A DNA stretch of 64,000 nt, taken from assembly GCA_043228905.1 (NCBI GenBank), contig JBHGNT010000003.1:8866001-8930000 (forward strand), read 5' to 3'. The notes under the pieces are model-generated. The model was given only the letters and a program-made list of their open reading frames with translations, was not told where the DNA came from and searched no databases. This stretch comes from Azolla caroliniana (Eukaryota > Plantae > Polypodiophyta). Positions 3,844 to 30,795 of the stretch are shown piece by piece. The position numbers were made by a program, and so were the translations under genes. Positions within the stretch are counted from its first letter, which is position 1. Each line of letters begins with the position of its first letter.

Positions 3844-3847
<4 letters not shown>

Positions 3848-3877
<30 letters not shown>

Positions 3878-4180: not shown

Positions 4181-4183
4181 TTC

Positions 4184-6600: not shown

Positions 6601-7586
6601 TTGCAGAATTATTCAGTGATGAATTGATCACCTCTTCCCCCGCAGGATTCTTGGTTGGATGTGGAAGTCTTGTGTGGTTGATTTGTTGGTCTCATTTGAA
6701 TTCAAGAATGTCCTAAGTTTTGTGAATTTCCTTAACCTATAAAATCCTAAAAATGGTTAGAATTTTGTTATAAGATAAAGAGACAATAGTAAAATGATAT
6801 AACTTGTAAATTGAACTTACCTTTAGAAATGGTTGGGATTTTATATTTGTTGAATATTTATTTCCTTTGTATGTGGTTATTTTTTGGCTCATAATTCGTA
6901 GGTGATTGCCCATTATCTTTCATCTACAAAACGAAAATAATGTGAATTAGAATTACTTCTCATTTTATGTTTTCAAAAAATCAAACTCTAGAAACAAATT
7001 TAGACTCGTGAAATGGGCAACCTTAGAACACCAATGAACCCCACTTGCATATAGTTAAAACAATTTGGAATTTGAGTTTGTTGAGATGTAAGATATGCAT
7101 GGATGTTAAAGGGAAGACGATGTAATTATTCCTGAAGTATTGTTGATATTGAACTCATGCTTGATTCAATCCTATCAACAACTTATTTGAGATGAGAAAA
7201 AGAAAAGAAAAGAAAATCAGCTTTATAGAGTGCTCATAAAATTATTCAAGAAGCAAATTCTGCCCTTATTTTTAAGCGTATACCTAAATGTAGGCAAATG
7301 ACCTTACATGAGTATGGTATGATATAGAGAATAACCAAGAAATTTTATTTTTGTTGATTATATTATTGTTTTTAATGTTTAGAATATAATTTTAATTTGG
7401 TTTGATATAATTTTGTCATGAAACAATGTAAATTTTTTGATGTAGAATTTGGCCTCCATAAAAAGCGCACCTAATACAATGGCACACTTAAGAGGACACA
7501 CACTTAATGGAATAGTTATTCTAAAGCGATAAAGATTAGAGCTTGGATGGAGAGGCATGTGTGTTTTCTGAAGTATCACATTGCAT

Positions 7587-7587
7587 A

Positions 7588-7662
<75 letters not shown>

Positions 7663-7665
7663 GTG
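7587..7665. repeat. (TGTGTA)n microsatellite
   Basis: Read directly; it explains the poly-HT ORF. Confidence 0.95.
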
Positions 7666-9573
7666 GAGATGGATGCATATGTGTGTGATTGTTAATTAGT
7701 GTGTATTTGGATGTGATTCCTAATTTTTGAGTGTTTTAATGGTTAATTAACCCTAATACTAACCTTAAATCTAACAATGTGTGTGACCATTTGTCAAATT
7801 TGTATGCATGTATGCTCATTTATGTGAATGTAATTTCTATGTGTGTAGAAAATGCATAACCCTAAACGTACTTGTGGATGGATGAGGTGAGGTGTTCATC
7901 ATTGCTCTACTACTTGAACAAGGGCTAGTGAAGAGATTGGAGAAGGTCATTGCCTTTCAAAATAAAATGACTACTCAAGTACAAACAAGGAACATACTAT
8001 AGATCGATGGAGTAAAAACAACCAAAAGCTTTGAATATTAGGACATAAGAATTGGAATGGGATATAGATGTAATAGTATGAGGGGGCGAAGGGTAACTAT
8101 ATGCAAGAAGATATAGAGAGAACAAGAATGAGGTAATTATCAACGGAACAAACAATGCAATAGGAAGAGTTGAACAGAAAATGAATTCTTTGTGATACAA
8201 AAATGCTAGAGAAACATTAAGACAAATAGAATATGGACTAAGGATTCAAACATGGTCACAAACATGGAGAGATTCTAACATTAATTGACCTCAGAATTGT
8301 AAAAAAACCGAGATTTATTCTTTAGCAATCACAATCTTTCAGGGTTTATATCTAATTCTCTACTGCTCCGATTTGAGTGAAATAAAGTTCTATAAATTTG
8401 TCTCGCTAAAACGAATCTTTAAGCACACTTAAATGCAGAAAACTGACTTTGTACATCTCCAGTAGAGTCTTCTGAAGTTTTTTATTAATATATGTCATTC
8501 TCGATTAACCATTACTTACATAGGCCAAGTATTCCCCTATTTTTGTTGTGGGAGAACCTTCATATACCTTCCTCTGTTCTTATCATGGTGTCTCACATAC
8601 ATTTTGCTTTTCCTTTTTCTTCTTTACGTATCCCATGTTTACCTTCTTTAGTGCCCACTGCTAATTACAAATATGGCCTAAGCCATTATGCCAAGTACTT
8701 AAACCCCACACATCCACACCTATTGTGTCATTATTTTAAAAATCTAAAAACGACACACTACATAGCATGGCTCTAATGCTCTGATTCAATGGTGAGAGGA
8801 AGGGTCGATATTTGAAAAGGAGGATTATGAATCCTCTTTTCCTTAGGTTTTACGAAAAAAATTGAAAAATGTTAAACTATGTGACACCTTTGTTTTCATA
8901 TTTCATCACAATAAATATGGAGCGTATGTTTGAGGAATTCCCCTCAACCATCCCAACACATGAGATGGTGTTGGGGTAAACAAACGAGGACATGACATCA
9001 CCCATTTGTAAATGTCGGCCACCTACAACTAAGTTTATCTCGTATGCCAAATTATCGACACCAACCAGGACAACAACTCAAGTAGAACCACTAGCACCAG
9101 AACCATCACCATCACGAAGAGCACAAGAACACCTAGTATAGGCGTGGTCACATTTACCCTGCAATACCCTAACACTTGTGACCATGACAACATGATTGTC
9201 CTTGATCCCAGTCCATAAATTCCAAAAGTTGATGGATTATGATTTCTGGTACGCCCCTGCTTGCACATCTTAACCAAAGAAAACAAGATATAAAACCAAG
9301 AAATTAGTGTGAACTACAATGCAATACGAGTTTCCCGAAATATAAACCTTTCACCACCCTCATCCTCTCAAGTTGGTTTGGTGGAATCTTTAACTAAAGC
9401 TCTATTATATTTCACGTCACGGCAAACACCATTTTCTATTCCAAATTAAGAACTCATGTTAAAGATAGAATGCAATAAACAATGCAATTACATGTGTTGG
9501 TTCTCTCGGAATCAAATGTAAACTTGATGAGAACATTTACGTGATTCGCCTAGGTGGTGGGGTTGTGCTAAAA

Positions 9574-10220
9574 AAGAAGTTGGATGACCTATTGGAGTCA
9601 TATCTCCCTCAAATGCATGCATATGTTTGTGACTTGTGATTGGTGTTACTTATGGGAGACATGTCCTTGTTTCCTTTTGTAGAGATAGCGAAAAATGCAT
9701 GCATATGTTTGTGACCAGTGATTGGTGTTAGGTATTGGAGACATGTCCTCGTCTCCTTTTGTAGAGATAGTGACAAAAATCATTAGAAGTGCGTTACTTA
9801 CTATCGAGAGTGCTCCTATACAACTTTCGTCAATCTAATGAATTGACTCGATTGAGTGAGAGATACCCCGCAAGACCCTAACACTTGTGACCACGACATC
9901 TTGGGGTTGGTTGGCAATGATCCCAGTCCATACATTCTAGGTAGGTGCATTGTTGATTGCATTCTATGTTTACAATGAGTTCTTAATTTTGGACGGCAAA
10001 AAAGGACAAAAAGAAGAAGTTGGATGACCTGGTGGAGTCATATGTCCCTCGAATGCATGCATATATCAATATGTTTGTGACTTAATTGACGTTAGGTATT
10101 GGAGACATGTCCTTGTTTCCTTTTGTAGAGATAGTGACAAAAATCATTGGCCGTGAGTTCCTATCAATGAGTCTTCCTATACAACTTTCGTCAATCTAAT
10201 TAAAATGACTCAATTGAATC
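9574..10220. repeat. Local duplications upstream of FAR: a ~83-bp unit in three copies within a larger duplicated block
   Basis: atgcatgcat(..)atgtttgtgac...ggagacatgtcct.gt.tccttttgtagagatag occurs at ~9612, ~9695 and ~10052; aagaagttggatgacct occurs at 9574 and 10014. Confidence 0.85.
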
Positions 10221-10390
10221 ATGTTGGATTTATACATATCTACATAATACGATTAATTGAGCTACTAATTTCCTGCACGCTCAGAAGAAATACCTACGTG
10301 TCTATTTCTGGGCCATTCATTGAGTGCCGTAATGAGCAAACCCTTCCATTTATTTAGTTAGAGAGCCCTTTGTCTCCTTCCCCAATTTAG

Positions 10391-10403
10391 TATATATATA
10401 AAG
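10391..10403 (+). promoter_or_regulatory. Candidate TATA box of the FAR gene
   Basis: TATATATATAAAG about 45-55 bp upstream of the ATG at 10447. Confidence 0.55.
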
Positions 10404-10446
10404 GGGTTACTTAACGAACATTTCTTCTCTGTGCTTTCACTTAGCC

Positions 10447-13400
10447 ATGAATATTTCCTTCTTCCACGGCTTGGGGTCGCCTTGCAAAGCTTATTATAAC
10501 TTATATGCCCAATTTAGCTCCCCACCTACTAAAATCAAGGCCAGTCCTCCAAGCAATACTACAAGTCATGCGAGACATAGGAAGCAATCTATGAATGCAT
10601 TGCTTAAAAATGGTCATTATATCAATGGAGGAGAAGGTACTAGTGTGGATTCATTCGTAGCTACTACGAAGGATTGGTCGCCAAATGGTAGCCCCATTAT
10701 GCAAGTCTTGGAGCCGAACTCGGAATCTCTCCATGGTGACCAATGTGCAGGAAGAAACGTGGACGTAGGTCCCCCTGGCCTGGACATTGTCCCTCTCCTC
10801 AAGGACAAGGCCATCTTCATAACCGGAGCCACTGGCTTCCTCGCCAAAGGTAATTATGAAAGTGGCCTAAATAGTTTTTTAACTACAACTAAATGCGATA
10901 CCCATATACCATTCCTAGCCAAAACTCGTGTTCTTCGGTTTACATGATATGATGTTCATAGACATATAACCTACTCTTATGTAGTCCAAAATGCACACCC
11001 CCCATTAAATATTTAACCGTCCACAATAGAATATCTTGACCATTGCATATCTAATAATATTGGACTTGTTGTTGTCCTTCGATTCGATGTGCAAGAGTTG
11101 TCTACATGATGTACTTAAAACACAGAAAAAGGGTTTGTGTGTAATCCTAAATATCTCGCTAAGATAATTAGTTATCACTTTGCTTATGTATCCATACCAC
11201 CTCCCAACTTTTCTGTAGTTTAGAACACTACTAACTTAATATACTTGAAGGTGGCAAAGTTCGGAACAAAATCACTAATTATATATATTAATGCTCTAGT
11301 ACAATATCATCGTTGTGCATTATGTTTGAAACTAGACCTTGAATTCCAATGTTTTCAATTAATATATTGAACACCTAATATTATCATTACAAATAAGTAG
11401 ATGGTCATGAGTAGATGTTCAATTCTCCTAATATTAATTACATGAGAATATCCTACAATGTAGTGCTTGTGGAGAAGATATTGCGGGTGCAACCAGATGT
11501 GAGGCATTTGTACTTACTAATCAAAGCACCAAATGCAAGTTGCGCAAAACTTAGACTAAAGGAGGAGATCTTATGTAGTAATTTGTTCAAATGCTTGCAA
11601 TCTCGCCATGGCGAAGAATATGAAGCATTCATGGAGCAAAAGATAACTCCCGTGGTGGGTGACATGACGAAGGAAATGTTGGGCATGGATCCCTTGACAT
11701 TTACCTTCCTTGCTACCAGAATCGATATAATCGTCAATTGTGCTGCTACAACGGGCTTCGATGAACGGTATGACCATGCACTAAATATGAACACGGGAAG
11801 CACTCGAAGAATTATGGAATTTGCTAAATGCTGTCAACATCTACAACTTTTAATGCATGTGTCAACAGGTGATGTTAACGTGGACCTTCGATTAATCCAT
11901 CAAACCTTTATTTACATTATTAGACCTGTATGTGTCGTATGCTAAGTTTTTTAATTTCTGTTGTTTTGTAGCCTTTGCCCATGGGAAACGAAAAGGCCTT
12001 CTGTACGAACAAACCTTCAATTATGGATACAACATTTCTAATGCGACCATAACCATGGACCCAAGTTTGCATCCTAGCACATTTGTCGATTTCGAATTCA
12101 AACTTATCAAAGAGAAATTGAGTGCCTTTAATGAGATTGCATCTACAAAAAATCATGATAGAGAAAACAACATTACTAACAACATGAAGGAGCTAGGATT
12201 GGAAAGGTAAGATAAAGAGTGTTGAATAAAGCTTAATCTTTAGCAATGTGAAGATATTCATTATTAAATTGATTGCGGGTTACTCTCCAATTGAGTAACA
12301 TTTATCGGCACCGGAATTGCTTTCAACCTTCTGGGTTGAGCGTAGAATGCGAATTCATATATTTTCTTGTAATGTCCTAAGTTTCTTGTGTGATATGTAA
12401 GGTCAATGGTTTCTCGTATGATGTATGCATAATGTGGTTTAGTGTGTAATCTCTTGGTATAAGTGCCTACTAGAAATTGAGAGAGACGATAATTGATCAT
12501 TTGATGTTAGAGCGAATCACTTTGGTTGGCAAGACACTTATGTCTTTACAAAGGCAATGGGAGAGATGGTTATTGATAGTATGAGAGATGATCTACCGAC
12601 GGTGATTGTGAGACCAAGTATAGTGGAGAGTTCATTAAAAGAGCCATTTCCAGGCTGGATAGAAGGCAACAGGTAATGGTGCTCAATGACATTTTTAACA
12701 CCATCTTTGGACTAATATCGTGACCATAACACATTACTTGAGCATAATATGTGTTAATGTTTTCTTATACACAAGGATGATGGACCCCATCATCATATCA
12801 TACGGAAAGGGTAAACTCTCTGGCTTCCCCATGGATCCAAAGTGTCTTCTTGATGTGGTTTGTATCTTCTCAATTTGTTCTTTGCTTTAGATTTTATTTG
12901 CAATCATTCTACTGTTTGGATTTACTTGGTTTATTAGTTCGTTTTCTTCATTTCCAACTCCTTTGACCACTATTTCATTCATTTTATTTAAGCCCCTTGG
13001 TATAAGTCTCTTCTCTTGAAACCTTGGTGCTCCAAAATTGCTTTTTATTTTTATTTTTACTATTGAGCATTTTCAACCATGGCTATTAAAATGATTACTA
13101 ACCCAAGTGCATTTTCAACCATTTTGATATTTCACTAAACCATGTGCACACTTCCATAATGGTGATTCTTGCATGTGTGTAAACCATATTTACCACACTA
13201 TGATTGGGAACACGATGTAGGTACCAGTGGATATGGTGGCAAATGCAATGCTTGCTGCCATGGCAAAACATGCTTGTAAGCCAGGATTAAAAATTTACCA
13301 CATTGCATCATCAATGGTGAACCCTTGCTCCTTGTCAAACAACATGAGATTCTTAGAAGAGCATTTTCAAGAGGAGCCTCTCATAGACAACACCGGAAAA

Positions 13401-14623
13401 CCTATAAGAAACATGAAGTTTCAAACTTACCGAGATATGGAGAGCTATACAGAGGCATTATCTCAAGTTGATTTGGAATCTAAGGTATCTTAAAATTTTA
13501 CTCTATGCAATATTTTACACACCAGTTTTTAAGGTAGACAACAAGATGGTTTATAACTACGTCATCTTCTTCTTCAATTTTTTGAATTTTTATCAAGTCA
13601 CTTCTTGAATCTATAAGTATTACTTAGAGGGGATGCTTCACGTCTCCATTCATATCATGCAAATGTAGACATTGTGCTTAATGATTAGTTTCTCTACTTT
13701 GGCTTGACATCCCCTATACATGCCCTATAAAGCCTTTAAAATATACCTTCGGTTTATTATCCTATTCCAAATGCATATATGTTTCAGTCATGTAAGTTGA
13801 TTTGGGTGTATCTTTTCAAAGGTATATTTTTCTAGCTAATGTGCACACATATCAATGTAACTAACCATTCTCCTTTACGATATCTAGGAATCAAGTCCAA
13901 AGTCCTTTAAACAGTACCAACAAATGGCTCTCACAATAAAAGAGCGTGCAATCAACCTAGCCAAAATCTATTATCATTACACATTCTATCAAGGAAGGTA
14001 GGTTCCTCTTAACACATTTGGTTACAAATAGTGAATATAGTGGGGTCTATACACGATGGCATCTTTCCAATTCTTATTGTTTAGAGAAGGGAACTCCAAA
14101 GTTTCAAGCTATTTTGCATGTTGAAGTAAATATATTCCTATGTTATTTAAAAGTGCATATATATTTGCTAATGTTGCATGTGGAAAAATGGGTTGTGCAT
14201 TTGTATGTTTGAGCATTCATGAACATTGCACAATATGGCATATAAGATATTATTAAAGAGACAAACAACAATACATTAATAGATTCTATGGTCTCCACTA
14301 TGTAGGCATGTTTCTCTTTCGTGTTTTACCTTCTCTCATGTATGCATAATACATGACATAGTTATATGTTGGTAAACTAACCTCAAATCAATTTATTTAA
14401 CAAAATGCACAACCAAACAATGCTCTACTTCATTTCAACATTTTCCAATGTTTATAGATTTGACACTTCCAATACACAACAACTCTATGAAAATCTATCA
14501 AGCGAAGAAAAACTATTATTTGGCTTCAATTTCAATGACATTGATTGGGAGACCTACATAAAAAAGATACATATTCCAGGCTTAAGGAAGCATGTATTAA
14601 AGGGTTTTCGCTCCAAACTTTGA
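10447..14623 (+). CDS. FAR: Alcohol-forming fatty acyl-CoA reductase (FAR, MS2/FAR2-like), 608 aa, 8 exons: 10447-10849, 11464-11868, 11972-12206, 12511-12672, 12776-12857, 13221-13484, 13888-13997, 14458-14623
   Basis: All introns are GT-AG, the phases are consistent (1827 nt) and there are no stops. Motifs: Rossmann [22 protein letters not shown], catalytic [14 protein letters not shown] (YxxxK), [31 protein letters not shown], and the sterile-domain end [11 protein letters not shown]. There is a ~110-aa N-terminal extension. Confidence 0.95.
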
Positions 14624-15117: not shown

Positions 15118-15300
15118 GACACGTTCGTGTTCACAAGTGGAAGGATCACGCATTCCACTTTTAGATTCCTTTTGTAGTAGTACAAATTTAGGCTATTGTG
15201 AAATAATGGGTGCACCAGTATCACATGATCAACCACCTATATAGAATTTGCTAAATTATTAATATATAACAAGTCTCTAAATAGAGAACATGTAGTTTTC
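15118..15300 (+). mobile_element. Diverged, orphan left terminus of the same TIR transposon family as 16153-25985
   Basis: GACACGTTCGTGTTCACAAGTGGAAGGATCACGCATTCCACTT matches the 16153 TIR, and patchy similarity continues ~180 bp (tgcac.agtatcacatg, agaatttgc). I saw no matching right TIR. Confidence 0.8.
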
Positions 15301-16530
15301 AGGAGAATATTTAAAGTCGATGATCTCCACTTCCGCAATGTATTTAAATTTAAGAATATCACAATGGTAGTCTCATCTGACACAAGTTAATGATTTGGAA
15401 CAATATTATTAAACTGGAAATTCTACTTTGTAAGCTGGAGTGTGAAAGTTCTTATGTTAGTTTATCTATCCTGTAGAGTTGTATATGCTAGAGGAGGAAG
15501 TGATATCTACATATTAGTGATTACAGTTGATTCAAAATGATCCTTAATGGATCTTGCAGGATATAATAGCAAAGACATATGTTTGTCAGAACCTATTGAG
15601 CAGACAAGCTCAACCTGATCCGGATTGGCTGAGTAAGCCAGAGTCGGATCGGTATCTGGAACTGAGAACCAGATTCGTGTCCGGAGAGGGGAGTTGCAAT
15701 GGAGAGCTTGATCGGTGTCTGAATCAGAGTGTAATAGGTAGGCCATTAGAGGCCTACGGTCCTAGCCTAGTATGTAGGCATATTTCTTGGAGTTAGCGTT
15801 AGACGCTCGGTACAAGTATTGAAGTAGATGTCAATACTTCTGTTAGTCCTTTCAAGGAATTGTATAAAAGTGTTCACTACGAACATTGTATGTAAAGAGT
15901 GTTTTATTAAGTTTTTGAATTTAGTTTTACTGTTCTACTCTCTCTCTATCTCTCATGCATACTCTCAGTGTTTCGTAAAGCCTCCATTAAAACTTGCAAA
16001 TACTTTCTATTCATAACCGGTGAACAACAAGAGGCCAGAAGTTGTAGCTCCGACAAGAGCTCAATAACATCCGAAAATGGGAAATGTCGGTTACCGACTA
16101 TACCACCAAAATAAAGGAGATCTACGACATATTGGGGTCCATCAACGTGACGAACACGTTCGCGTTCACAAGTGGAAGGATTGCGCATTCCACTTGTAGA
16201 ATCTTCTTAAAACGAAGCAAATACACCCTCTCTACAAAAATTGGATGCACTAGTATCACATGTTCCTCAACTTGATGAGAATTTGCAAATATAAAAATAC
16301 ATGATAGGTCTACGAGTGGAGATCATTAGAAATCATGCAAGTTTGGACGTGTTGATAAGTTAATGTAGGCATAATAAAGTTCAACAATGGCTCAATATGT
16401 CACTACTGCGACAAGGGAAACACTAACTTAAAGACTTATATTAATTAGGTAAGTTTTACAAAAATATGAGGTGTACTTGTATCCATACTAATAAAATGAG
16501 TTATAATTTATACTTTGACCCATACGTGCA

Positions 16531-16800
16531 TGTATATAATTGTGGACAATGTAGGATAGTGCACATTAGGATAATGTGATTGGAATAACTAACTTATTAA
16601 AGTATTCAATACTTGTATTTAAAGTTGATCTAATCTATTCCTCAGTTTGTTCATATGGGATCAAACCATATGTATATAATTGTGGACAATGTAAGGCAGT
16701 GAACTTTAGGATAATGTCATGGAAATAACAAACCTATTAAGGCTTTCATACCTGTATTTAAAATTGATCTACTCTATTGCTTAGGTGATTCACACAGGAT
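16531..16800. repeat. Two-copy ~140-bp tandem duplication in the left subterminal region of the transposon
   Basis: tgtatataattgtggacaatgta...ttaggataatgt...tgtatttaaa.ttgatcta occurs at 16531 and 16671. Confidence 0.85.
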
Positions 16801-17195
16801 TAAACTCCGAACGATAACGCAAGTGGAACCATTATCAACACACTACACAATCTAAGCAGCAATGGAATAGAAACATAATAGTTTTAACAATAGAAGACAA
16901 AGATCCATAATAATATGGACAGTCATGGCAACAATTGTAGGGCCATGTTATGTTAAGGTTAGCTTGGACCAAAATCAGCCTCAATTTAAACTAATTCATG
17001 TTTCTCCATAAATTTGGTAGTCAGTTATGCACGTGGTGCAACCAATGTCATAAATCTACTAACCAAGTATATAAAAATAAAATTGAAACATATAGAAGAT
17101 TATAAAGAATAGAATCCACTAAGTAAAACCCAAAATTTGTATTAATAATGTGAAATCCAAACAAATCGTCAGTGTCATTTTCTTCATAGAGTCTA

Positions 17196-20100
17196 TTACA
17201 TAGCAATCAATTCATCAATATCATTTTCTTCATCATCTTGTGTAGAACTCTCTTCGGCTATACATGCATTGGCTTCCCCTGTTAGCCGAGCCAACGAAAT
17301 ATCTTCTATAAGCTCATCATCAAGCTCTATTAGCTCCCCCGGTTCGCCGGCTAACGGAGGAATAGGCTCTCACGAGGCAGGTTGAAACCTTTCTGTATTA
17401 GCGAGGTTCTTTGCACCGACCTCCTCATCCTGGTCTGGGCACTCCCACAAAGCCTTAATCCTCATATTTATAAATATAACCTGCTCCTCGTCCTTCTCCA
17501 ATGCAACTGTATTTCTAAAGAGCTTCAATGCACATGCAGACGTCGTCCCTATGAAGTAAGTAACAAGAATAATTAGTTGTCAAACAAAAAAGATTCGGTA
17601 TTGGTTATCTCAAGATCGTTACCCTAGTTCGAGGAATACCTTTGCCAGAAAAGAGATCTAATATCTAGTCTCCTTCGATAGAAAACATCTCAATCAAGCA
17701 CATCATAAGTCGTTGAGGTTTTTGATATGGGTTGACAAGTCCCCGTTCTGTCGTGGTGACATGTCGCAATTTCCATGTCACTGCTGGATATACCAACATA
17801 TTTGAACCCCCCACTTCATTAGAATGCTCCTTGATTCTTTGTTTCTTAATTTCTTCGAAGTAGCCAACTGTGATGTATTCAATGGCATTAACGAACCGAA
17901 AAGTTGGCCCTCTATTTACATTGGTTTTTATCCTATAAAAAATAATACATCGAGTTAAGAATAGATTGAACAACCTTAAGAAATGCAATATAGTGAATGA
18001 CACCTATAAATAATCCTTACCATGCAAGGTTCTCGATGCCATGGCAACGAGATCTCAAAGCTTGAGCTACCGAGTACTCTTGGTCCATACTATGAAAGAC
18101 AACTATTCGCCACAAGGATGCAGTTAGCTCAGCGAAATCCTTGACCATCTTCTCCAATTGTTTAAACCTAAACGGTTCATCGTCATATGATGACCCAACC
18201 ATTCGAAATCCGTAAGGAATATCCGCAATCATTAGCGTATATTCCTTCTTTGGCACTTTTTGGATCAAGTCGACGACATCGTCGCAAACTACATTGTAGT
18301 AAAGATCTCTCGTAATATCTTTTTTGTGGCTAAATTTTTTAAAGGAGCCATCTTCCTCCATTTCGTACGCCTTGACTAAGCGACGATCCTTTGCTTTTCT
18401 GGCTCGCTCGAGATGTGCAAGGAAGGATGTAGGGAAATCGTGTATATCCTTAACTTCTCCTTGTTTCTTGCCACGACATGGTTTCTAATAGAAGAAATGG
18501 AACATCAGGTATTGTTATACAAGCTCTACATATGATGAAAGCGTAATGAAAAACCACCAATACTAACCCAATCCTTGAATGCAATAAAATACTTTGATAA
18601 CGCCTTATATGAAGACGTTAGAGGATAATCCTAGGTCACTTGTTCCCAAGTTATACATCCAAGTTGTTTCATCATAACTTCTTGGATCTTCATGTACACC
18701 TTATGACTGTAAAATTAGAAATCAAGATTAGAACTTTGAATTACACCATATAGACTTTAATATCAATATTTGAAAGACTTACTTATTGAACTCAGTGACC
18801 ATTTCTTCAAGGCTTAAATCTTTCGCCACAACCCTTGACAAAACAGACACAAGAAGTTGCTCGTCCTTAATACCTTGCATCGCTCTCCACAGAGACAACT
18901 TCATGTCGTCAGCCGCTTCTTCAATTGTCAAGTCAATTTTCTTGGCAGCTTGTGACTTTAACTCTAGTTGAGGGTCAACCTTACATTTCTTTTGTCGTTG
19001 ACCCTTTACCTCCTTATTCTCCCACATTGAGAAGATTTGATCTTGTAGGTCCCATACTTCTCCATCTCTAAAGGCCATTTGAAACCAAGACTCATATTTT
19101 CAAAGACCATCGGACTTAACATTATCATCTACCACAATGCCGACTTCATGCAGACATTGACGTCGTAGACCTGGATGTAGCTTCACACCAAACTTTTGTT
19201 TCACGTCCAAATACTCGTGGTGGAAGAACCGTATACGCTCAATTGACGACATTTTCTGCCTATAGTCATTATCATTATTATGGTCCCATGCCAACAGCTT
19301 AGCCTCTTCCATTGTGAGCCCAACATAAATTTTGCACTCGGCATACTTGAAGAAGAAAGTCGTTGGATGTTCTCTCACAAGTTGCCGACGTGCCTCCGCT
19401 GAATGCGATCCACCAATGACAAAGTAATTATATTGATCATGCTTTCTAATATCAAAATCTTCAATGGTTTCACATTCTTCAGGATCTACCATAACAATAA
19501 AAGGCACCACAGTGGCATGAGGATTTATTTTCATTTTTTTCTTGAGATTTTGAACATGCATGCGGTGTGGCTCTCTAATCTCAAGTGGTCTTCGACCTGT
19601 TTTTTCATCAATAGGGGGCCGATGGATGTGTGTTATAGGCAAATTAAACACTTGCCCTTTCTTGACCAGTTTACGCTGCATTAACTCTCTCCTTATCTTA
19701 TTCTGCTCGAATGACAAAACACCCGATGCCATCTCAGCTCTTGGCGTCCCCTTAGTGTCCTCCTCTTCGTTTTCACTTGTTGAATCAGAGTCCGACATTT
19801 TGGTTGTCTTCTTCTTTGGTGGTCTTGATTGTACTTTGGATACCCTTTTTGTGGCCTTCAATGGGGAGGGCACTACATCTCTTAGAGTTACATGGCCTTG
19901 TATATAAGGCCTCAAGGTAACAATAAGGTTTTGTGAGCTTTCAAGATCTTTTTTGAACGCTTCTGGCCCACAAGATTCCTTTAATAGAAGATCTTCTAAA
20001 AGGAACACTTTACGTACCCCCTTGGAGCACTCTATCATTACCAGTATGTTGGCCGAATCTGCATCTTTATAGTCAAATCGTAGAATACGACCATACATAA

Positions 20101-21348
20101 ATGGGGTTTCCTTTCCAAGCTGCCCCTCCCCCTTCTTCTTTGTTGTATACAATACAACTTTTTTCTTTGAGTCGACGTATTGCATACACCATTCCTTGTC
20201 CGTTAGATCATGGTCAGGAAGGTCTTCACCTCCAGTAGCTGCTACAAGTTTCTTTTGGCTAATGTCAATGTGTGGTTGAGATTTTGCCTCCTCGTTGAAG
20301 AGAAGCTTTTTTCCTCTCTTCATGGACTCAGGAGCTACCTTGGTCTGTGCTTCGATTGGAGAACCCTGTATGTGAAGCTTTATTTTCTTCACGGGTCGGT
20401 CCGACAGGTTCTCAAACGACCTATTTAAGAAAGTACATGCAAAAACATAAGTTAGGTGGTCACGTAGATTAAGGTTGTATATTAAAATATAAATAAGTAC
20501 ATGAAGAAAGGTTCTCACTAGCAGGCGATTAGTGGTGAACTATAAATATCAATCATGCATTCAGAGTACATGGTAGTCCTATATTCAAAAATCTATTCTA
20601 GTAAGGGCTATTCAACTTAGAAAATATATATCGTAATAAGTATACAGGGTTATATATTCTCTTGAAGGGGAGGTATCACTTATATTGATTCCATAATTAT
20701 ATTGAGGATAATTTGCTATTGTAAAGGTAATTTGTGGGTTATTTTCTACTATTTAAAGCTATAGTAGGTCATAAAACACCTATAATTAAGGCCCGCTTTT
20801 TTAAAAAAGTAAGGGAAGTCGACATAAAAAATACTGATTTTGACAGACAGTTTGATATCTTTTCCACACAATAATTAATTGTTGCCCCAAAACACACAAT
20901 ATTTCTCTTTCAGGGTCTTCTTTTATACAGGAACTCGATACGGCGTATCGAGTTCCTGTTTAAAAAGCAAACATAATCCAGGAACTCGACACACCTTATT
21001 GAGTTCCTGTTTTAAACACAAATATTGCATAGGAACTCGATATTCGATACGTCGTATCGAGTTCCTGTTCGATACGGCGTATCGAGTTCTTGTTTAAAAC
21101 CTAAACTTTAAACAGGAACTTGATATGCCGTATCGAGTTCCTGATATGCCGTATCGAGTTCCTGTTTAAAAAGCAAAGAAAAAATAGGAACTCGATACAC
21201 CGTATCGAGTTCATGTATAAAGTTTGTATTTTATACAGGAACTCGATACGATGTATCGAATTCTTGAGTGACAAAACATATTTACAAAAATGTCCACAGT
21301 GTCAGAGGCCTACCTGGAGTCCTCACGCTCGATTCTCTTTGAAGACAT
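17196..21348 (-). pseudogene. ParB/Srx-like domain plus beta-class N6A/N4C DNA methyltransferase, ~973 codons, 6 exons: 21348-21314, 20420-18783, 18706-18568, 18484-18021, 17932-17640, 17548-17196
   Basis: GT-AG introns give a phase-consistent 2922-nt frame. ParB-like: FNLPITHIHRPP..HVQNLKKKM..PFIVMVD..YFVIGGSHSAEARRQL..LAWDHN. MTase: VVCDDVVDLIQKV..LMIADIPYG (motif IV), W-IK, EY, NPYQKPQRLMMCLIEMFS.EGD.ILDLFSGKGTTSACALKLFRNTVALEKD (motifs X, I, II). Four in-frame stops at 19100, 18630, 17665 and 17369. Confidence 0.9.
20927..21264. repeat. Array of palindromes ACAGGAACTCGATAC-nnn-GTATCGAGTTCCTGT in intron 1 of the ParB-MTase gene
   Basis: A perfect inverted repeat with 15-bp arms at 20927-20959, and further copies at ~20979, ~21032 (compound), ~21114 (compound), 21186 and 21235. 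Confidence 0.92.
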
Positions 21349-21474
21349 GGTTGATCATGTGGCAGTGGAGGTGGAGATCACGCTTTCGTGCTTCATGCTC
21401 TATGTGCTTTGTGTGCTTTGTGTGCTCTTGTATGCTCTTGTGTGCTCTTGTGAGTGAAATATGACGAGGTCTTT

Positions 21475-22185
21475 CTATTTATAGGGATTGACCACAGTGG
21501 TTAAAGTAACCATAGTCACCTTAACCAAGGTTGGTAAGTTTGAGGATAGTTAGTTCGTAACCATAGTCACATTAACTAGAGTAACTTATGATTGCATTAA
21601 TGATTACAAAGTCAAACTAACATATTGATCAATCTTTTATAGTCATAACAACCTGCAATGACTTCAAAGGTCATGAAGGAGACAATGATAGAGGTTCATG
21701 AATGTACCAATGATTGATTACTAAAAGCAACAATTTTTATGACTCTCAAATGCTGTGTATTAAAGATGTGGGCATGAATTAACCAATGATTGATAAGTCT
21801 AATATTTACAATGGTGAGCATTAAAGAACCAATGAGTGAGAGGTTCTATATCAAATATGGGTGCCATTAATTAGCCAATGATTTTAACATTAATCCAACA
21901 TATTTATTGCTTGGTAATGATTAGATTTATATTATACTTGATTTAACTTCATATAGACCTAGTTTAAATAATTATTGATATTTTAAATACAATTACTATA
22001 TTAAAAATAATATTTTTATGTATTGTATTAATATAATATTAAATAATATAGACATTCTATTGAGGGAGCTTTTGTTTAGAGAGAAGTTTATGTTTAGAGA
22101 GGAATATATGTTTAGAGAGGAGCTTATTAGTTTTTTGCCTTACCCTAAGCACATAACTTACAGAGCCCTATCTAGACCTTAAGCC
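21475..22185. promoter_or_regulatory. Candidate bidirectional promoter between the MTase and transposase genes
   Basis: TATAAATAG on the - strand at ~21475-21483, about 130 bp upstream of the MTase ATG. Repeated CCAATGA boxes at ~21707, 21783, 21829 and 21875, an AT-rich core, and three copies of tgtttagagag near 22073-22119. Confidence 0.55.
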
Positions 22186-22189
22186 ATGA

Positions 22190-22346
22190 GTGAAGATTCA
22201 CCGTTCTCGATTGAAGAATATTGTTTGTCATCAGACTCATCGTTTTCTACTGAAGAGTATTGTTTGTCGACAGACTCACCATATTCTATTGAAGAATATT
22301 GTCTGTCGACAGACTCACCATATTCTATCGAAGAATATTGTCTCAA
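22190..22346 (+). repeat. 39-bp in-frame tandem repeat (SIEEYCLSTDSPY, about four copies) at the transposase N-terminus
   Basis: Visible in both the DNA and the 22186 ORF. Confidence 0.9.
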
Positions 22347-24794
22347 CTCATCTTCACCTACAGGGAATGTAAATAATGACACATGTGAAGAGTTCTCTAT
22401 TGAAGAATACGATATTAATAAAGATATGGAGAATGAAGGTAGTGCCAAGGAAACATTGAATAACATTGGTGATGGTCACAACAAAGAATTAGATTGTAAC
22501 AAGGTTACACCAACCTCTATGCAGGAAGAGAAATCTGGAAGCCCTATGCATATTAGAAGAATCCCATGAAGAATTTGTCTGGCTAGATTTAGCTTGGTGA
22601 CATCAAATAAACATATTGGATTTGATGTCAAAAAAATATGTTGTGCCCGTGGTTGTATGTCTATGATTGGAAAATCAAAGTTGCGAGAATTAAGGCGATA
22701 CTATTTTTCGATGACCGGTGATGAGCAAGACACTTACCTCGGGTTACATATGCAACTAGTATCTGATAAATGTATGGGGATCAAAGTATCATTCGAGTAT
22801 TATATCTTCCATGCGCAACAGATATGTAGAGTTGCATTCCAAATTGCGTTATGTGTTAGTAACATGCGGCTACATAGAGTACAACAACGTCTACTTAGCG
22901 GGGATCAGATGCTCAATTGTAAAGAGGTTCCAAGTATGAAAGGTGCAATTGGAAGAAATGCTATTGGTTGGATGAAAACTTACTTTCAGTTAAATTGTGA
23001 AGTAATGCCCACTATAGGTAGGATGCACCTTTCTGATAAGTATACACGTCGGGAAGTTTATGATGTTTATCGATCTGATATGTTGGGCTCACGTAATAAG
23101 TCTATCACCTATAGCCAATTCACAAGACTATGGAGAGCTCGGTTTTCAAATGTTATCATTCCACGTAAAGTACGCATGGGGTATTGCTCCATTTGTGCAA
23201 ATCTTAAAAGTTTGGCTAAAGGTGCAAAGACATCAATGGAAAAGGATATGAGTAAGAAGTTACTACAAGAGCATCATGAGGCACAATCGTTAGAACGAAA
23301 GAAGGCGATGCATCATAGAGAGAAGTGTTTGAAGGGGCCCGAACAATACATGTGCTTAATGATAGATGGCATGGACCAGAAGAAGACGTGCTTGCCGCAT
23401 ATGCGGAGGCTCCCCAAAGATGTCAATGAGGAGTGCCTTGTTCAAATGCACTTGGTGGGATGCTTGGCTTATAATAGGTCTGTTGGACCTCACGTCTTCA
23501 TTACATACCCCAATGTTCACAATGACCCTAACCTAACAGTTACAGTCATTCACCGAGTTTTGATGTCTTGGGGCCAACCTTTCCCCCCTGTTCTATACAT
23601 TCAATTGGACAATACTGCTAGAGAGAACAAAAATTCAACTGTGTTTGGCTATCTAAGTATGTTGGTCAACCAAGAATTGTTTAGGAAAGTGAAAGTCAAT
23701 TTTCTTATGGTTGGCCACACAAATGACCATATAGATCAGATGTTTAGCACATTCTCCAGACAGTTGTCTTGGCATGATGCTTTCACTTTACCTAAACTAT
23801 TTGATGTCATTTGTGATGCATATACACCACGCCCAAAAGTGTTACACTTGAAGGAGGTATATGACTTTAAGAGATATATATTAGATGGGGGTGGTGGGAA
23901 TGTTAAAGTGCTTGCTCAGTTAAACAATATAAGTTTCAATCACATTTTTATGATAAAGAAAAATGGAATAAGTGGTTCTACACTTTTGTATGCTAAACAA
24001 TATTCATCTTCTACAACATGGGAACCTTAAGGTGGTTGCCAGTTATTACTTTGTATGCCGAGTACAATTGTCCATGGAGCTAAGCAAATGCCAATTCAGA
24101 AGAAAGGACAGTTGAAGAGTGACTTGGTATTAGAACAAAAACGGTCATGGCTCCAAGCCTTAGAAGAAAAAAGAAAGCATATTGAGGCCGCCAAGAAATA
24201 TGTTGCACAACAAGACACGTCATGGTGGGATGTATTTTATAGTGATAAGAAAGGAATTATAGACAATTGTGTATCTGGTGATAATTGGAATTTGGAAACG
24301 CCATTCACATGGTCGCTGCAACATGATCGTGTAAATAGAACTCCGGAGCAACTAGCAAATGGGATTAATGACAGCTTGGTCCATCCACAACAAAGAGACA
24401 TTTATGTGGGACCAAGGATGACCAAAGCAACCGAAGCTAGATGGCAAGGCAATTTGCAAGAGCTCACCACGGGGATGTTGATTGCAACGCCGGCTGATGA
24501 GAACTCACATGGCCACCAATTTTGGGTTGGTAAAATTGTAGAAGTGCTAATGCATGAAATAGAAAACATGATCAAGTCTATAAATGTTCATTGGTACAAC
24601 ACTAGAAGTGAAAATGCTTTTACAGGTAAGTATACATTGGAGATGATTGAATGCCCAACAAGAAGGGGAGGTAGGAAGAGGAAACGAAACATTCGTAACA
24701 CCTCGACCCTTGATATCTCTGATGTGGATATCATCGTGTACGACTTCACACTTACAAAAGTCGGATGATTAAGGAAATCAACAATAGATATAAA

Positions 24795-25434
24795 TGTGAA
24801 AGTGTTTTTAGAATTCAAGGTATTGAAGCCTACAAAAATATAAGGTATGGAGCATTCACACCCGAAGGCCAAGAACACGAGCTAAGGTTTCAAGTATAAG
24901 TCAAACTAAAAGCAAGAAAGATGGAGAAAAGTAAAAGAAGGAAAAAGCAGACCACCAAAAAGCAGTCAGAAACAAACGCTCATAACTCTCTCGTTTGACA
25001 CCCAAATATCACGTGTAAATATGGATTAGAAAGCTTATGCCGAGAGCTATCCGTAGCTTTTTAAAACTCTAAATTTGGAGCATGGATGAGGGAGATATGA
25101 TGATTAGAAGATCGTTGTGTCATAGCTAAGAATAGGAGATGGAAAAGCTCTAAAAAAAGCGTGGAAAAGAAAGCAAGCGAAACTTATCTACTAGAGGAGA
25201 ACTTCATATAAAGCAAGAAGAGTGAGGTGGTGAGGAGAGCTTTTTTCTTGTGGTGTTTTTTCTTGCCTATTCATGTAGTGCGTTTTTCTAGTGATCAATT
25301 CATCCTTGTAGGCTTGAGTTTATGTATCTTCTTTCTCTTGTTTCTATGATCATCACTCCTTATTAATATATCTTTGTAGATTTGGGTTTCTATATCTTCC
25401 TTCTCTCTCTTTTCTATCATCATCTCTCTTTTCA
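24795..25434. mobile_element. Solo LTR (640 bp) inserted in the 3' part of the transposase
   Basis: TGTGA...TTTCA ends, flanked by ATAAA/ATAAT (5-bp TSD with one mismatch). Removing it rejoins the transposase frame. Confidence 0.75.
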
Positions 25435-27624
25435 ATAATAAAAGAAAAATTACCAGGTCTACAAGGTGGCTCGAGTCAAAGGCAAACGAGATTTGCTACA
25501 TATAATCTAGAGTCAAACCATTTGGTTTATGACGAAGATAATGCACTGATTGGTACATCCGAGGATGACAAGGAAGAATCGTTATTGTATATTAGTTATA
25601 GTAGTGATTCTCCATAAAGGAGTGATCATGAATGTATATTTGGCTATTAAGTGTAACTACATTCCGCTTGTAACAAATCGAGTAGTATAAAAGCATGTGT
25701 TTTGAATTCTTATGATTTCTAAAAAATCGTTTCTTATAAAATAACATTGGTTGTAAAGTTTGTGATATAAATTGAGAATGTAACTTTTTGAAATTCGTCT
25801 TTTTTTAGTTACTTCTAAATCACGAAAATAGTGGATTTTTAACCTTTTTCATAGTATGTTTGAACATGCATGATACTGGTATCAATGTGTTTTGTAAAAT
25901 CATTGAAAAAGCCCTAAAATCAACCAAAATTTCCCTTATCCTTCCATTTATGCGCGATCCTTCCACTTGTGAATGCGAACGTGTTGACGGTGGACGAAGA
26001 CGAGATGGTCCAAATCTGCCTCTATGGTTTAGCGCAAAGGTACGGACCTATCTGGACGGCAATTTGCCCCCGGGAGAATCCACCGTCCTTCTTTGACTTG
26101 CAATCGATGTTGATGGTCGAAGAAAACCACATGAGTGGGTCGAGGACCACTCAATCAGATAGCCAGATGTTGTGCACGAAGGCGGATCGGCCTTGTGGGC
26201 GTGGAGGACGAGGTGGGCCAGCACGCAATAGCAGCAGCCGGGAAGAGCAGAATCAGAGGCACAGAGAGAGTGTCGGCAATAGTTTCGAACCCTCCACAAG
26301 AAGGGGAGTCAAGGTGGCGCTTGAAACCAACAATCCAAAATCGATACAGAATGCTAGTAATGTGACAAGAAAGACCATCGAGAACGCAAGTGCTAGAAGT
26401 AGCACGCTGATTTGGATAAATCTAGATCCAGCAAGGCTAGACAAGGGAATCGGCAGGGCTCGCACTACGCAAGAGGATTAGAAGGATCCAGAACCGGAAA
26501 GACTGGAAAAGAGCCAGCCTTAGTGATGAAGCACGAGGCGAAATCGATGAAGAAGACCACTTCCAAATCGAAGGAAGTGTGGTATGTTGATTTTGGAGTG
26601 GCAAACCATATGATGAGCCACAAAGAGTGGTTCTCGTATCTGGAAAAAACAGAGCAATCGGGAGTTGTCGAAACCAGAGACGACACCCCTCACCCAATCG
26701 AACATGTTGGAGAAATCCCCTTAAGTCATGTCGGACAAAAAGTGAAGTTGATGAACGTATTACATGTTCCGACAATTACGAAGAATGTGATGCCGGTCGA
26801 AGGTCAAGTCGGATATCGACTTGTGGCATAAGCAGATCGGCCACGTAAATTATCAAAGGCTTCAGGACTTGCAGTCAAAACAGGTTGTGTTCGGACTGCC
26901 CAAATTCAATGGCCGGAAGGCTCGAATTTGTGAAGCCTGCCAGCTTGGGAAGCAACATCGGCTTCCATTCCCTAATGAGCAAAACTAGAGCCAAAACAAG
27001 CTCGATTTAATACATTCGGATGTATGGGAACCGGCACAAAATGTTAGTCTTGGCTGGAGTCGATATTTTGTCTCCTTCATCGACAACTACAGTTGACACA
27101 CATGGATCTACTTGATCGAAAAGAAAAGCGAAGTTTTCGATTGTTTCTAGAACTTACAGAGTTTAGTTGGATGGGAAATAGAAAGGAAGATCAAGTGCAT
27201 ACGGTCGGATGGCGGAAAAGAATACTTTTCAGGCCAATTCAACAACTATCTGCAGTAGAAGGGAATTCGAAGAGAATTCAGTTGCAGATATACACCTGGG
27301 TAAAATGACGTAGCCGAGAGGAAGAATTGGTCGATTGTGGAAGCGGCACGGGCAATGTTGAAAGAAAAGAGCATGTTGAAGTTCTACTCGGTCGAAGTAG
27401 TTCAGACTGCGGTGTACATCTAAAACCGGATGGGGAGAAGGTGTCAGCACATGAGCTGTATTTTGGACGGAAGCCGAATTTATGACACCTAAGGGTATTC
27501 GGCAGCATAGCGTATGTGCATGTGCCCGATGAGAAGAGCAAGAAGTTTGACCCGAAGTTGGAGAAGTGCATCATGGTCGGCTACTCACATGAATAGAAGG
27601 GGTAAACAAACAAACAAGTTCGAG

Positions 27625-30600
27625 TGTCATGATATGGCATGGTATGACTCCAAAATTATTTGAACCCATGACCTTGTGTTACAAAGGTTGAACCCTTACC
27701 ATTAAACCATGCATTGTAATACAAAAAATATTATTTTCATTTACTATTTCACTATAGGAAATTCATGTATATTCTAGATTACTCTGGAACATTCTAGAAA
27801 CTTCAGGAGTATTCCTGACATTACTATAAATAGAGGCACATGACATTATTAAGAACCAATTCAGTTCAACGCCAGTCTTAAGCCTCCTAGCTGTTCTTGT
27901 ATCTTTCTTCATATAATATAATATACTTCTTGTTGTCATCATTCTCTCTCTCTCTGTCTTCCCCTCTCGTGATTCTCACACACTCTTTCCCTTCTTAGTA
28001 CTAATCCTCAATCTTCTTCTCTATCTTTAGTGTTAATTCTCCTTGCCTCTAGTACTATCCCTCACAGTTTGAACCGAATTCCTCATCTTCTTAACCCCCC
28101 TTCCCTTCATACTAATCCTCTTGTCCTTCCTTCCTCCAATACTATGGAAACTGTTAGAGCTCAAGAATACCAATCTATCTTCTCGAAGCTACCGTGCTTG
28201 AAAGAAAAGTTTGTAATGCTAGAACAAGAAAATCAACGGTTATTGGGGGATCTTCAACAAATCTCTCTAGAGAAGCAGCAAATGCAACAACAACACGGAG
28301 AGTTGGCATTACATGTGCAACAACTTGAAGCAACCATTGTGTCATTGCAACAACAGGAACCAAGTACTCAAGGAATTCATAAAGAATCCAAGATCGGTCT
28401 TCCTACAAAATTCGATGGAACACGATCACAATTCATAAGATTCCATAATCAGGTACATCTCGTGATTCAAATGCATCCTTCCCGATATCCCACCGCTGCA
28501 TCACGAGTAGGACAAGTAGGCACGTTGCTTAGCGACACAAATTTAGCATGGTTTGCTCCTTTGTTAGAACAAAGATCTCTATTGTTAAATAATTTTGAGG
28601 AATTTATCAGCAAGTTTAAAGCCTGTTTCAGGGACACACACCGATAGTGTTAAGACGGCAATCAATAAAATCCGAAGATTGCATCAAGGTGATCGTCCAG
28701 CCTCTCAGCTTAGGCTGCGGATTTTTGTCTACTCGCCGTCGATATTCCCTCAGATGACCTAGCATTGATGGAGCAGTTTCGATATGGACTCCAAAATGAT
28801 GTCAAAGATTTACTCTTGACTTTCCTTTAGGAACCAAAGTCTCTCACAGAGGCAATCAGTCGAGCGGTAACAATTAGTACTAAAAGTAACCCTCTAGTAC
28901 ATGTCTTAGCACTCCTAGATTCCGGAGCAAATTCTTGCTTCATGGATAAGAATCTTGTCGAAGCTCATCAGATATCCCTAAGAAAACTCCATTGCCTAGC
29001 TTTTGTAGTAGTCATTGATGGTTGTCCCATTGCTTTCGGAAATATCGTAGAAGAGTCAGAGCCAATTAGTGTTGTCCTAATTAATGGCACAAAGTTTTTC
29101 ACAAAAATTGACTTACGAGGAGCATATAACCTCATACAGATTCGACCGGGACATGAATGGAAGACAACTTTGAGTATACAGTTATGCCATTTGGCCTCAC
29201 CAATGTGTCAATAGTCTTCCAGCACATGGAAAATGATATATTCTGAGATCATTTGGACATCTGTTTGATCATGTACTAGGATTATCTACTAGTTTATTCA
29301 AAGACATAGGAGGAGCATGATTCTATTGTACTATTAGTACTAAGACGACTACGAGAATATGGTCTTTATGCAAAGCTGGAAAAGTGTAGTTTTGATTGTA
29401 ACCAGGTGGAATTTCTAGGCTATGTCATCTCCTCGGAAGGCATATCTATGGATCCAGCTAAAGTCCAAACCGTGTTAGAGTGGCAAACTCTGCATTCATT
29501 GCGAGATGTGCAATGCTTTTTAGGATTTTCAAATTTCTATCGCAAGTTTATACATGACTACTCAAAGCTTATTTTACCGCTCACACAACTTACAAAGAAG
29601 GGACAATCGTTTGTTTGGTCTAAGGAAGCGGACACGACTTTTGAAGTTCTTAAGAAAGCAATTACATCAGCTCCTGTTCTAGCTCATGTTGATCCGCAAA
29701 AACCATTTATCATTGATGCAGACACGTCAGATTTCGCCCTTGATAGTATTTTGTCACAACAAGGTGATGATGAGAAACTACCTCCCGTGGCTTTCCACTT
29801 GCACAAATTTGACACCGCCGAAATCAACTACGAGATACATGACAATGAGTTGTTAGCAATAGTGGATTCTTTTGCATAATGGAGGCATTTTTTAGAAGGA
29901 TCTCCGCATCAAGTCACTGTATTTAGTGATCACAAGAATCTTGCCTACTTCCAGAATGCTTGTGTGTTAAATAGACAACAAGCTCAGTGGGCTCAATTCC
30001 TCACTCATTTCGACTTTAAGATTATATATCATCCGGGCAAGCAACAAGGGAAGGCAAATGCATTTTCACGACTCTCATATCTAACTCCTTCCCTTCGACA
30101 ATCAAAAGCAAGTAATCTTGGGTCCTGCACGACTTCAAGCAACATGGGTTTTTGACACTCCATTGGATTCCCGCATTATCGATACCATACATGAAGATTT
30201 GAAGACAATGTTTTTGCTCAAGCTATTCTAGATCAAATCGATCCCTCTCGAGCATCTTGTACACGGTCACAACAACCAGGTACCGATTATCGACAATTCA
30301 AATGTCATGATGGTTTACACTTCTTTAAGAAAATTTTGTATGTCCCCAATGGTTCTTGTCGCCTTCGAATAGTACAAAATTGTCATGACACATACACATC
30401 CGAACATTTTGGTAGTACTAAAGTTGGATTTAGTACAACGATCATTTTGGTGGCCCATATGCGAAGATTTGTCGAAGACTATGTTCGGACATGTGATACA
30501 TGTTGCATAGTGAAGATGCCTCGACATCATCCATATGGTTTGTTGGAGCCATTACCGATCCCAAGCAAACTGTGTCAATCTATTTCTCTGGATTTTATCA

Positions 30601-30640
30601 CAAATCTTCCGGATTCGAAGGGTTTCAATGCGATCTTAAC
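27625..30640 (+). mobile_element. Degenerate Ty3/gypsy chromovirus (Tcn1/Tf1-sushi-like): 5' LTR 27625-28066, gag, protease, partly deleted RT, RNase H and start of integrase
   Basis: The LTR (TGTCA...TCACA) resembles 49097-49525. Motifs: gag [44 protein letters not shown], and the integrase zinc finger H..GH..CDTC. Confidence 0.88.
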
Positions 30641-30795
30641 TAGTGTAGAAACCAGAACACCAGGTCATTTAGAATAGGTAATATGTCTCATTCCTTTATT
30701 GATAAATACATGAGATGTCAAGAATTACAACTTTTTAACAATTTTTCAAGAATGTATCACGCTGTTGGCTGTGACGTGCTTTGGTTGCTTGGGGG

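Follow-up and report, generated by a model that had tools for sequence, protein, structure and literature searches.

A decayed DNA transposon in the fern Azolla caroliniana with a DUF7869 transposase gene, a ParB-like methyltransferase gene and a palindrome array

Positions 16153-25985 of a 64,000-nucleotide stretch of Azolla caroliniana DNA (contig JBHGNT010000003.1 of assembly GCA_043228905.1, positions 8,866,001 to 8,930,000 of the forward strand; the whole stretch is called the window here) are a decayed copy of a high-copy DNA transposon family with terminal inverted repeats (TIRs). Three modules lie between its ends: a transposase gene of the DUF7869 family, a divergently oriented gene for a ParB-like protein fused to an amino-methyltransferase (MTase), and an array of palindromes between the two. 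We prefer the reading that this is a decayed three-module transposon whose active copies would target the amino-MTase to themselves through the palindromes and would benefit from the resulting mark, and we give this reading a probability of about 0.55.

Results

A bounded element inserted in a copia-type gag gene

The element is flanked on both sides by the 4-bp target-site duplication (TSD) GACG, at 16149-16152 on the left and at 25986-25989 on the right. The left TIR (16153-16188) begins AACACGTTCG, and an inverted-repeat search places the right TIR at 25950-25985; both are 36 nt long and complementary at 34 of the 36 positions (94%). The TIR pattern was found three times in the window and not at all in shuffled sequence, which is far beyond chance. 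When the element is excised together with one GACG, a single gag-like open frame runs over the junction (...GSINVT/VDEDEMVQ...). Downstream of the junction, at 26412-26828, lies a Pol_BBD domain, which is characteristic of copia-type polyproteins; searched separately against Pfam, the two halves of the split gag gave no match. A preliminary description of the window had proposed a precisely bounded element with 35-bp TIRs, a GACG duplication, a clean insertion into copia gag and two head-to-head genes. Apart from the TIRs, which measure 36 nt, this picture was borne out: a DUF7869 open reading frame (ORF) lies on the forward strand, and a ParB/Srx-fold domain with MTase exons lies on the reverse strand.

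The third match to the TIR pattern (15118-15225) is a lone left end from a related copy, 1 kb upstream of the element. It has two mismatches across the 29-nt TIR pattern and a patchy resemblance to the left end of the element over ~100 bp; no right-end partner was found within the window. Inside the left end, beyond the 3' end of the MTase gene, a subterminal direct repeat of ~110 bp (85%) occupies 16530-16639 and 16670-16778. Downstream of the copia-type gag and Pol_BBD, gypsy-type pieces were detected at 28030-30677 (Ty3 capsid-like, RT_RNaseH_2 and Integrase_H2C2). Since they adjoin the copia-type sequence, the region is a retrotransposon nest.

The transposase gene

The transposase gene consists of a main part at 22186-24791 (+) and the last 60 codons at 25435-25617 (+), the latter placed by alignment to intact relatives. 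Together, these two parts share 94% identity with the intact 926-residue relative P0150. The ORF 22594-24030 (+) matches Pfam family PF25273 (DUF7869) with 172 bits (cut-off 26, E 1.4e-50); intact relatives, namely P0145 and the ORF of contig L004, score 176-178 bits. Among 29 aligned homologues (from ferns, Riccia, amphioxus, bivalves and one cnidarian), D258, D339-N340 and G-H-T-H...D381 (numbered in this ORF) are invariant or nearly so. An AlphaFold2 (AF2) model with a predicted local distance difference test score of 82 matched the folds of Mos1, IstA, PFV integrase and TnsB. These matches are weak (E at least 3.5e-3), and all of the best ones are RNase-H-fold transposases or integrases.

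The two parts of the gene are separated by a 643-bp insertion in the region coding for the C-terminus (24792-25434). The insertion is not present in the relative L010, and P0145 and P0150 align straight over it; no obvious TIR was seen within it. In-frame stops lie at 22567, 24028 and 24766. The N-terminus of the protein is encoded in part by a 39-nt tandem repeat (22210-22341; 3.4 copies, 88%), which translates into an acidic, Ser/Glu-rich repeat of 13 residues (S-I-E-E-Y-C-L-S...).

A ParB-like domain fused to a beta-class methyltransferase

The ParB-MTase gene lies on the reverse strand, and its exons were analysed one by one in searches and fold comparisons. The large exon (19103-20434) encodes a PH/SANTA-like barrel, a linker rich in Ser, Lys and acidic residues, a ParB/Srx-fold domain and a helical extension, as delimited by AF2, Foldseek, VIA and the 38 homologues of the 472-codon ORF 19100-20518 (-). 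In the AF2 model of this ORF, residues 281-417 adopt the ParB/Srx fold. The top 40 Foldseek matches of the ParB-like region are all ParB, Noc, PadC, sulfiredoxin, KorB or SbnI (best E 2.4e-4), and VIA-align gave Z scores of 10.1 for PadC, 9.6 for KorB and 8.2 for both pNOB8 ParB and Arabidopsis Srx. Residues 99-221 (about 19883-20221) form the beta-barrel, for which the SANTA domain of M18BP1 was the best VIA match (Z 6.2), followed by PH-like domains. As modelled, and with a Z in the ambiguous range, the barrel may be a chromatin-targeting module. Pfam and NCBIfam gave no match or only sub-threshold ones for the window ParB exon and MTase exons, and phmmer against the sequences of the Protein Data Bank (PDB) found nothing for them.

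Next to the large exon, a conserved middle domain (AFRDGEVWDLQD...) is encoded at 18779-19099 (-), which in relatives continues the ParB exon. Three MTase exons follow on the same strand. The one at 18021-18484, whose upstream limit is approximate, carries motif IV (I-A-D-I-P-Y-G-F) and ends at a donor GT (18020-18019). The exon at 17640-17932 encodes W-I-K-T-N..., N-P-Y-Q-K-P-Q and the first half of motif I; the exon at 17373-17548 encodes the second half (G-T-T-S-A-C) and helices, starts after an acceptor AG at 17550-17549, is colinear with Ginkgo P0037/P0038, and its frame closes at 17370-17372. The motif order is thus permuted, with IV ahead of I, and motif I is split by a GT...AG intron (G-D-x-I-L-D-L-F-S-G-K-G / T-T-S-A-C-A-L). 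In a tblastn search of the two MTase exons against the single intronless ORF of a metagenome relative (L011), the matches abut exactly at 7910/7911, and therefore the predicted splice junction is supported.

The window exon 17640-17932 matches PF01555 weakly, with 14.5 bits, under the gathering cut-off of 26.7. Because of this sub-threshold score, membership of PF01555 rests on the intact relatives, which reach 68.9 bits in Ginkgo, 47.6 in Adiantum, 48 in L009, 38 in L004 and 39.9 in L011. The nearest solved enzymes to the MTase domain are all N6-adenine MTases (M.RsrI, CcrM, MboIIA and DpnA-type), and in PHROGs the domain matched generic 'DNA methyltransferase' families only. A word-indexed search with the MTase region of Ginkgo, to which a length filter applied, gave only paralogues from Ginkgo and two weak matches. 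The proposal of a beta-class MTase, with motif IV before motif I, fused to a ParB-like domain therefore finds support in the motif order, in the PF01555 scores of the relatives and in the ParB/Srx fold.

The putative 5' end of the gene was delimited from the sequence only and spans 21314-21483 (-). It comprises a TATAAATA box near 21483-21476 as a candidate promoter element and a putative first exon with an ATG at 21348 and a donor GT at 21313-21312. Just downstream of the box, at 21395-21452, about five copies of the 10-nt repeat TGTGCTCTTG lie in what is putatively the 5' leader.

A palindrome array between the two genes

Between the two divergent genes, at 20921-21266, lies an array of about seven copies of the 31-nt palindrome CAGGAACTCGATACG-N-CGTATCGAGTTCCTG. 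The half-site GGAACTCGATACG, with at most two mismatches, occurs 13 times in the window and always within 20930-21250, compared with 0.77 occurrences expected by chance; the window-wide search found none near the element ends or TIRs. Arrays occupy the equivalent position in seven relatives (L001, L003, L004, L008, L010, L011 and L013). The sequence of the palindrome is lineage-specific: the fern copies share the core TCGAT(A/G)C, and the palindromes of Riccia (L013) and L011 differ from it.

Distribution, age and selection of the family

The head-to-head unit, a DUF7869 gene facing a ParB-like ORF with PF01555-bearing exons, recurs on independent assembly contigs (L001, L003, L004/5/6, L007 and L008/9), whose ParB regions are 49-69% identical to that of the window; protein identity of the unit across independent assemblies is 49-86%. 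Three relatives (L001, L007 and L010) terminate in the TIR of the window element, one end only apiece, and a further complete element was not obtained for the close fern subfamily. For this reason, evidence for a different TSD comes from the liverwort Riccia sorocarpa (L013, CM100795.1). There, R1sor_010795 (DUF7869) and R1sor_010796 (ParB-MTase) lie head to head in an element at 2883-13813, the TIRs of which begin AACAC and which is flanked by a TAGA duplication. A second, compact DUF7869 element without a ParB-MTase gene (18064-22101) adjoins this MTase-bearing element. The Joint Genome Institute (JGI) metagenome contig L011 has 28-nt TIRs (96%), again beginning AACAC, around a DUF7869 gene and one intronless ParB-MTase ORF of 789 aa. 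The expectation that both genes would be found within TIRs bordered by different 4-bp TSDs is accordingly upheld by the Riccia element; the flanks of L011 are ambiguous and gave no clean TSD, and the close fern relatives are single-ended.

Further ParB-MTase homologues occur in Chara braunii, Adiantum nelumboides, Ceratopteris richardii and Ginkgo biloba. Those of Chara, Riccia, Adiantum, Ceratopteris and Ginkgo are annotated as 'hypothetical' or 'DNA methylase N-4/N-6 domain-containing'. Across the family, the MTase motifs read D-[IAVL]-P-Y-G-F, (N/C)PYQKP and, for motif I, G-x-G (F-S-G-x-G-T-T); from Chara through to the ferns, the catalytic D-x-P-Y-G-F and the S-adenosylmethionine (AdoMet) motif F/C-x-G-x-G-T have been retained. 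Synonymous divergence (dS) is saturated between most copies, with nonsynonymous divergence (dN) of 0.05-0.5, and therefore only two or three values of omega (dN/dS) are usable. Omega was 0.14-0.20 for the transposase (against L010) and ~0.02-0.1 for the MTase and middle-domain pieces, with ~0.02 for the MTase exon against L007. These sequence comparisons support conservation of the MTase motifs under purifying selection.

Contigs from a DNA run with the same organism label were mapped on 17000-22600. In this run, 9,277 different short contigs match the 5.6-kb stretch at no less than 85%, and the family is therefore highly repeated. Gene trees of the transposase and of the ParB-MTase for seven elements are compatible and give the same order of distances from the window. 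Because head-to-head units recur across the family, the copy number is high and the trees agree, the ParB-MTase gene is neither a one-off capture nor a single-copy host gene, two possibilities that the preliminary description had raised against its own proposal. Instead, it is an integral and long-conserved part of the transposon lineage. Judging from its sequence occurrence in ferns, in Riccia and in the metagenome organism, with TIRs starting AACAC, the three-part unit of transposase, ParB-MTase and palindromes is old.

Both genes of the window copy are inactivated

The MTase gene had been called complete, which does not hold. Two nonsense codons interrupt it, TGA at 19100-19102, which lies between the large exon and the middle domain and replaces the CGA (Arg) read by relatives and contigs, and TAG at 17665-17667, in the exon 17640-17932. 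At the latter codon, all other fern-type copies examined have Trp (TGG) except the Ceratopteris richardii copy L002 (MU262555.1), in which a stop occurs at the same Trp codon (D-D-stop-V-L-D-L-F-S-G-T-G, ~12850). Nearly all contigs of the mapped DNA run carry the sense base at the stop sites (A>G at 19102 in 21 contigs, T>C at 17666 in 19 and at 22567 in 26), so the stops at 17666, 19102 and 22567 are private to the window copy. All three arose by C>T or G>A transitions, two of them CGA>TGA and one TGG>TAG; going by the sequence, changes of this kind are what one would expect if methylated cytosines had been deaminated in a silenced copy. In run X15, only unspliced, DNA-like pieces were found over 17000-22600. 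With stops in both genes and the 643-bp insertion in the transposase, the window copy is dead. The earlier view of a two-gene mobile system consequently stands for the TIR- and TSD-bounded two-gene architecture and fails for this copy, which is inactivated in both genes.

Discussion

Comparison with known systems

The closest parallel comes from red algae. In Plavaka elements of Bostrychia moritziana, PAG2 combines a PF01555 MTase with a SET domain and PAG3 a ParB-like domain with a 2OG oxygenase; genes of the PAG2/PAG3 type with inverted-repeat arrays are also reported on Zisupton, Mutator and Fanzor elements, and self-binding and self-modification have been proposed for the PAG elements (preprint, 10.1101/2025.02.11.637652). 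The family described here shares with Plavaka the make-up of a eukaryotic DNA transposon (DDE/D in Plavaka, with D/D/D candidates here), a PF01555 methylase, a ParB-like domain and tandem inverted repeats beside the ParB-like gene. In contrast to the red-algal cassette, in which they reside on separate proteins, ParB and MTase form one polypeptide here (a single ORF in L011), and no SET or 2OG domain was present in any family protein scanned. The transposases differ as well, DUF7869 with 4-bp TSDs here versus CACTA/Plavaka in red algae, as do the hosts, streptophytes here and red algae for PAG2/PAG3; the cassettes are compared by their domain make-up.

Prokaryotic and phage ParB_N-N6_N4 fusions likewise have an N-terminal ParB-type domain and a C-terminal beta-class amino-MTase. 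The significant matches of the Ginkgo MTase domain include two ParB-MTase fusions (P0197 and P0303). Of the best prokaryote-type MTase matches, ten lack a ParB domain and two others have it. Introns, the PH/SANTA-like barrel, the middle domain and a divergent ParB motif set the plant proteins apart from the prokaryotic fusions, from which they may plausibly descend.

The Sola superfamily of eukaryotic DNA transposons, comprising Sola1-3, was reportedly introduced by Bao et al. in 2009. Sola2 has a 4-bp TSD (PMC3627910). Like Sola, the present elements are long, make 4-bp TSDs (GACG in the window, TAGA in Riccia) and encode a long transposase with D/D/D candidates, and transposase homologues occur in bivalves and cnidarians, two groups from which Sola has been reported. 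The sequence features of a 4-bp TSD and three conserved Asp fit a Sola assignment, a likeness of features in which membership by sequence is that of Pfam DUF7869 only.

Amino-MTases on other mobile elements and in other eukaryotic nuclei differ more. DIRS and DAM-LTR retrotransposons carry a prokaryote-derived DNA adenine MTase and are reported to be absent from Streptophyta (10.64898/2026.05.21.726589); they resemble the present family in bearing a prokaryote-type MTase on a transposable element (TE) and in the proposed exploiting or altering of the host epigenetic landscape, and their MTase is of the D12/Dam class, a different family from the N6_N4 MTase here. The presence of MTases on Mariner elements of viruses was pointed out in 2013 (PMC3627910). 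MpDN4MT1a/b of Marchantia and the bdelloid N4CMT are, like the enzyme described here, beta-class N6_N4-type amino-MTases, and they work in eukaryotic nuclei. Marchantia and Riccia are both marchantialean liverworts. MpDN4MT1, which writes N4-methylcytosine (4mC), has an N4C-type motif IV (TSPPY) and is of a type present as a single or tandem host gene. N4CMT carries a chromodomain, not ParB (PMC8885841). In contrast to these host genes, the ParB-MTase is multi-copy and TE-borne and has D-[IAVL]-P-Y-G-F as its motif IV.

A literature search on DUF7869, on Sola with methyltransferase and on PF01555 with transposable elements found no description of the streptophyte family and no mention of DUF7869. 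Within that literature, the novelty suspected in the preliminary description holds for the streptophyte family. It is tempered by the red-algal transposons reported in 2025, in which a PF01555 methylase is combined with a ParB-like protein and neighbouring inverted-repeat arrays, and also by the retrotransposons with Dam-type MTases.

A possible self-marking mechanism and its alternatives

In the mechanism we favour, the ParB-like part would recognize the palindromes of its own element, much as ParB recognizes parS and in line with what has been proposed for red-algal PAG3, and, bound there, would concentrate the fused MTase on the element. The MTase would then methylate the DNA of the element, probably at N6-adenine rather than N4-cytosine. 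Such a mark could benefit the element by countering host silencing based on 5-methylcytosine (5mC); alternatively, it could couple expression or binding of the transposase to replication. Dam couples the transposition of IS10 and Tn5 to replication. Because motif IV contains Asp and every one of the nearest solved enzymes is an N6-adenine MTase, the sequence makes N6-methyladenine (6mA) the more likely product of the putative enzyme, ahead of 4mC. That, all the way from Chara to the ferns and Ginkgo, a DUF7869/Sola-like lineage has carried a self-targeting writer that deposits 6mA (or 4mC) in cis is a wider claim, which we regard as possible and put forward only tentatively. If true, fern-scale genomes would hold large TE-written tracts of non-5mC methylation that protect or regulate the element.

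A number of observations weigh against self-marking. Pfam ParB_N does not match the ParB-like region, for which only DUF6551 appeared, at E 0.03 in three relatives; in place of the canonical ParB box GERRxR the region reads G-G-S-H-S-A-E-A-R-R; and a profile comparison of the region with prokaryotic ParB-MTases was not significant (hhalign with P0303, E 0.015, probability 3%). The limits of exon 1 and intron 1 of the ParB-MTase gene are ones that we infer from sequence signals, and none of the contigs from two runs presumed to be RNA was placed on 17000-22600. As to the product, changes of specificity between 6mA and 4mC have occurred repeatedly among N6_N4 enzymes (PMC8885841). As to the palindromes, they are scattered through the MTase-bearing element of Riccia, and the compact, MTase-free element next to it has a palindrome of its own, GTCCATGAGACTCATGGAC, at both flanks and inside, for which reasons the palindromes may serve the transposase or a promoter.

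The Riccia palindromes lend weight to a different account, in which the enzyme is active and acts genome-wide, on target sites or replication intermediates, and the palindromes belong to the transposase or to a bidirectional promoter; the position of the window array between two divergent putative promoters would suit this as well. We consider it unlikely, as the window half-site is confined to the central array and is never near the TIRs, and transposons of red algae provide an independent recurrence of a ParB-like protein next to inverted-repeat arrays. The accessory protein could also be a structural or DNA-binding transposition factor that aids synapsis, nuclear targeting or copy segregation and whose MTase domain has lost the capacity to methylate DNA. 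Binding to DNA or chromatin is indeed suggested by the ParB/Srx fold and the PH/SANTA-like barrel, the PF01555 scores of the family are only modest, and the MTase-like domains of DIRS1 were judged inactive (PMC4738411). Against this, the catalytic and AdoMet motifs are kept from Chara to ferns and the dN/dS of the MTase exon is very low, and we find such a role rather improbable.

What the Ceratopteris and Chara loci could suggest, having no transposase within 10 kb of the ParB-MTase gene, is that this gene belongs to the host or is a one-off captured fragment that merely sits inside the window copy. This count against an integral role is met by much to the contrary: the unit is found inside TIRs in three deeply diverged lineages, thousands of distinct contigs from one DNA run match the gene, the transposase and ParB-MTase trees are compatible, and the Ceratopteris copy itself has a stop codon. 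A host gene or captured fragment is thus already contradicted, and we assign it a negligible probability.

Significance

To our knowledge, DNA methylation in land plants is held to be 5mC only, with the 4mC of Marchantia sperm as the single exception. The family described here reaches very high abundance in at least one plant genome and extends from Chara to Ginkgo; its members encode an amino-MTase that is conserved, apparently selectable and fused to a ParB-like domain. Were the enzyme active, one would expect ferns, liverworts and gymnosperms to contain 6mA or 4mC written by TEs. The family would then also be the second, independent case, after red-algal Plavaka, of a transposon-borne DNA-modifying toolkit with cognate repeat arrays, and it would provide a concrete pair of protein and site for studying how transposons manipulate the epigenetic silencing imposed by their hosts.

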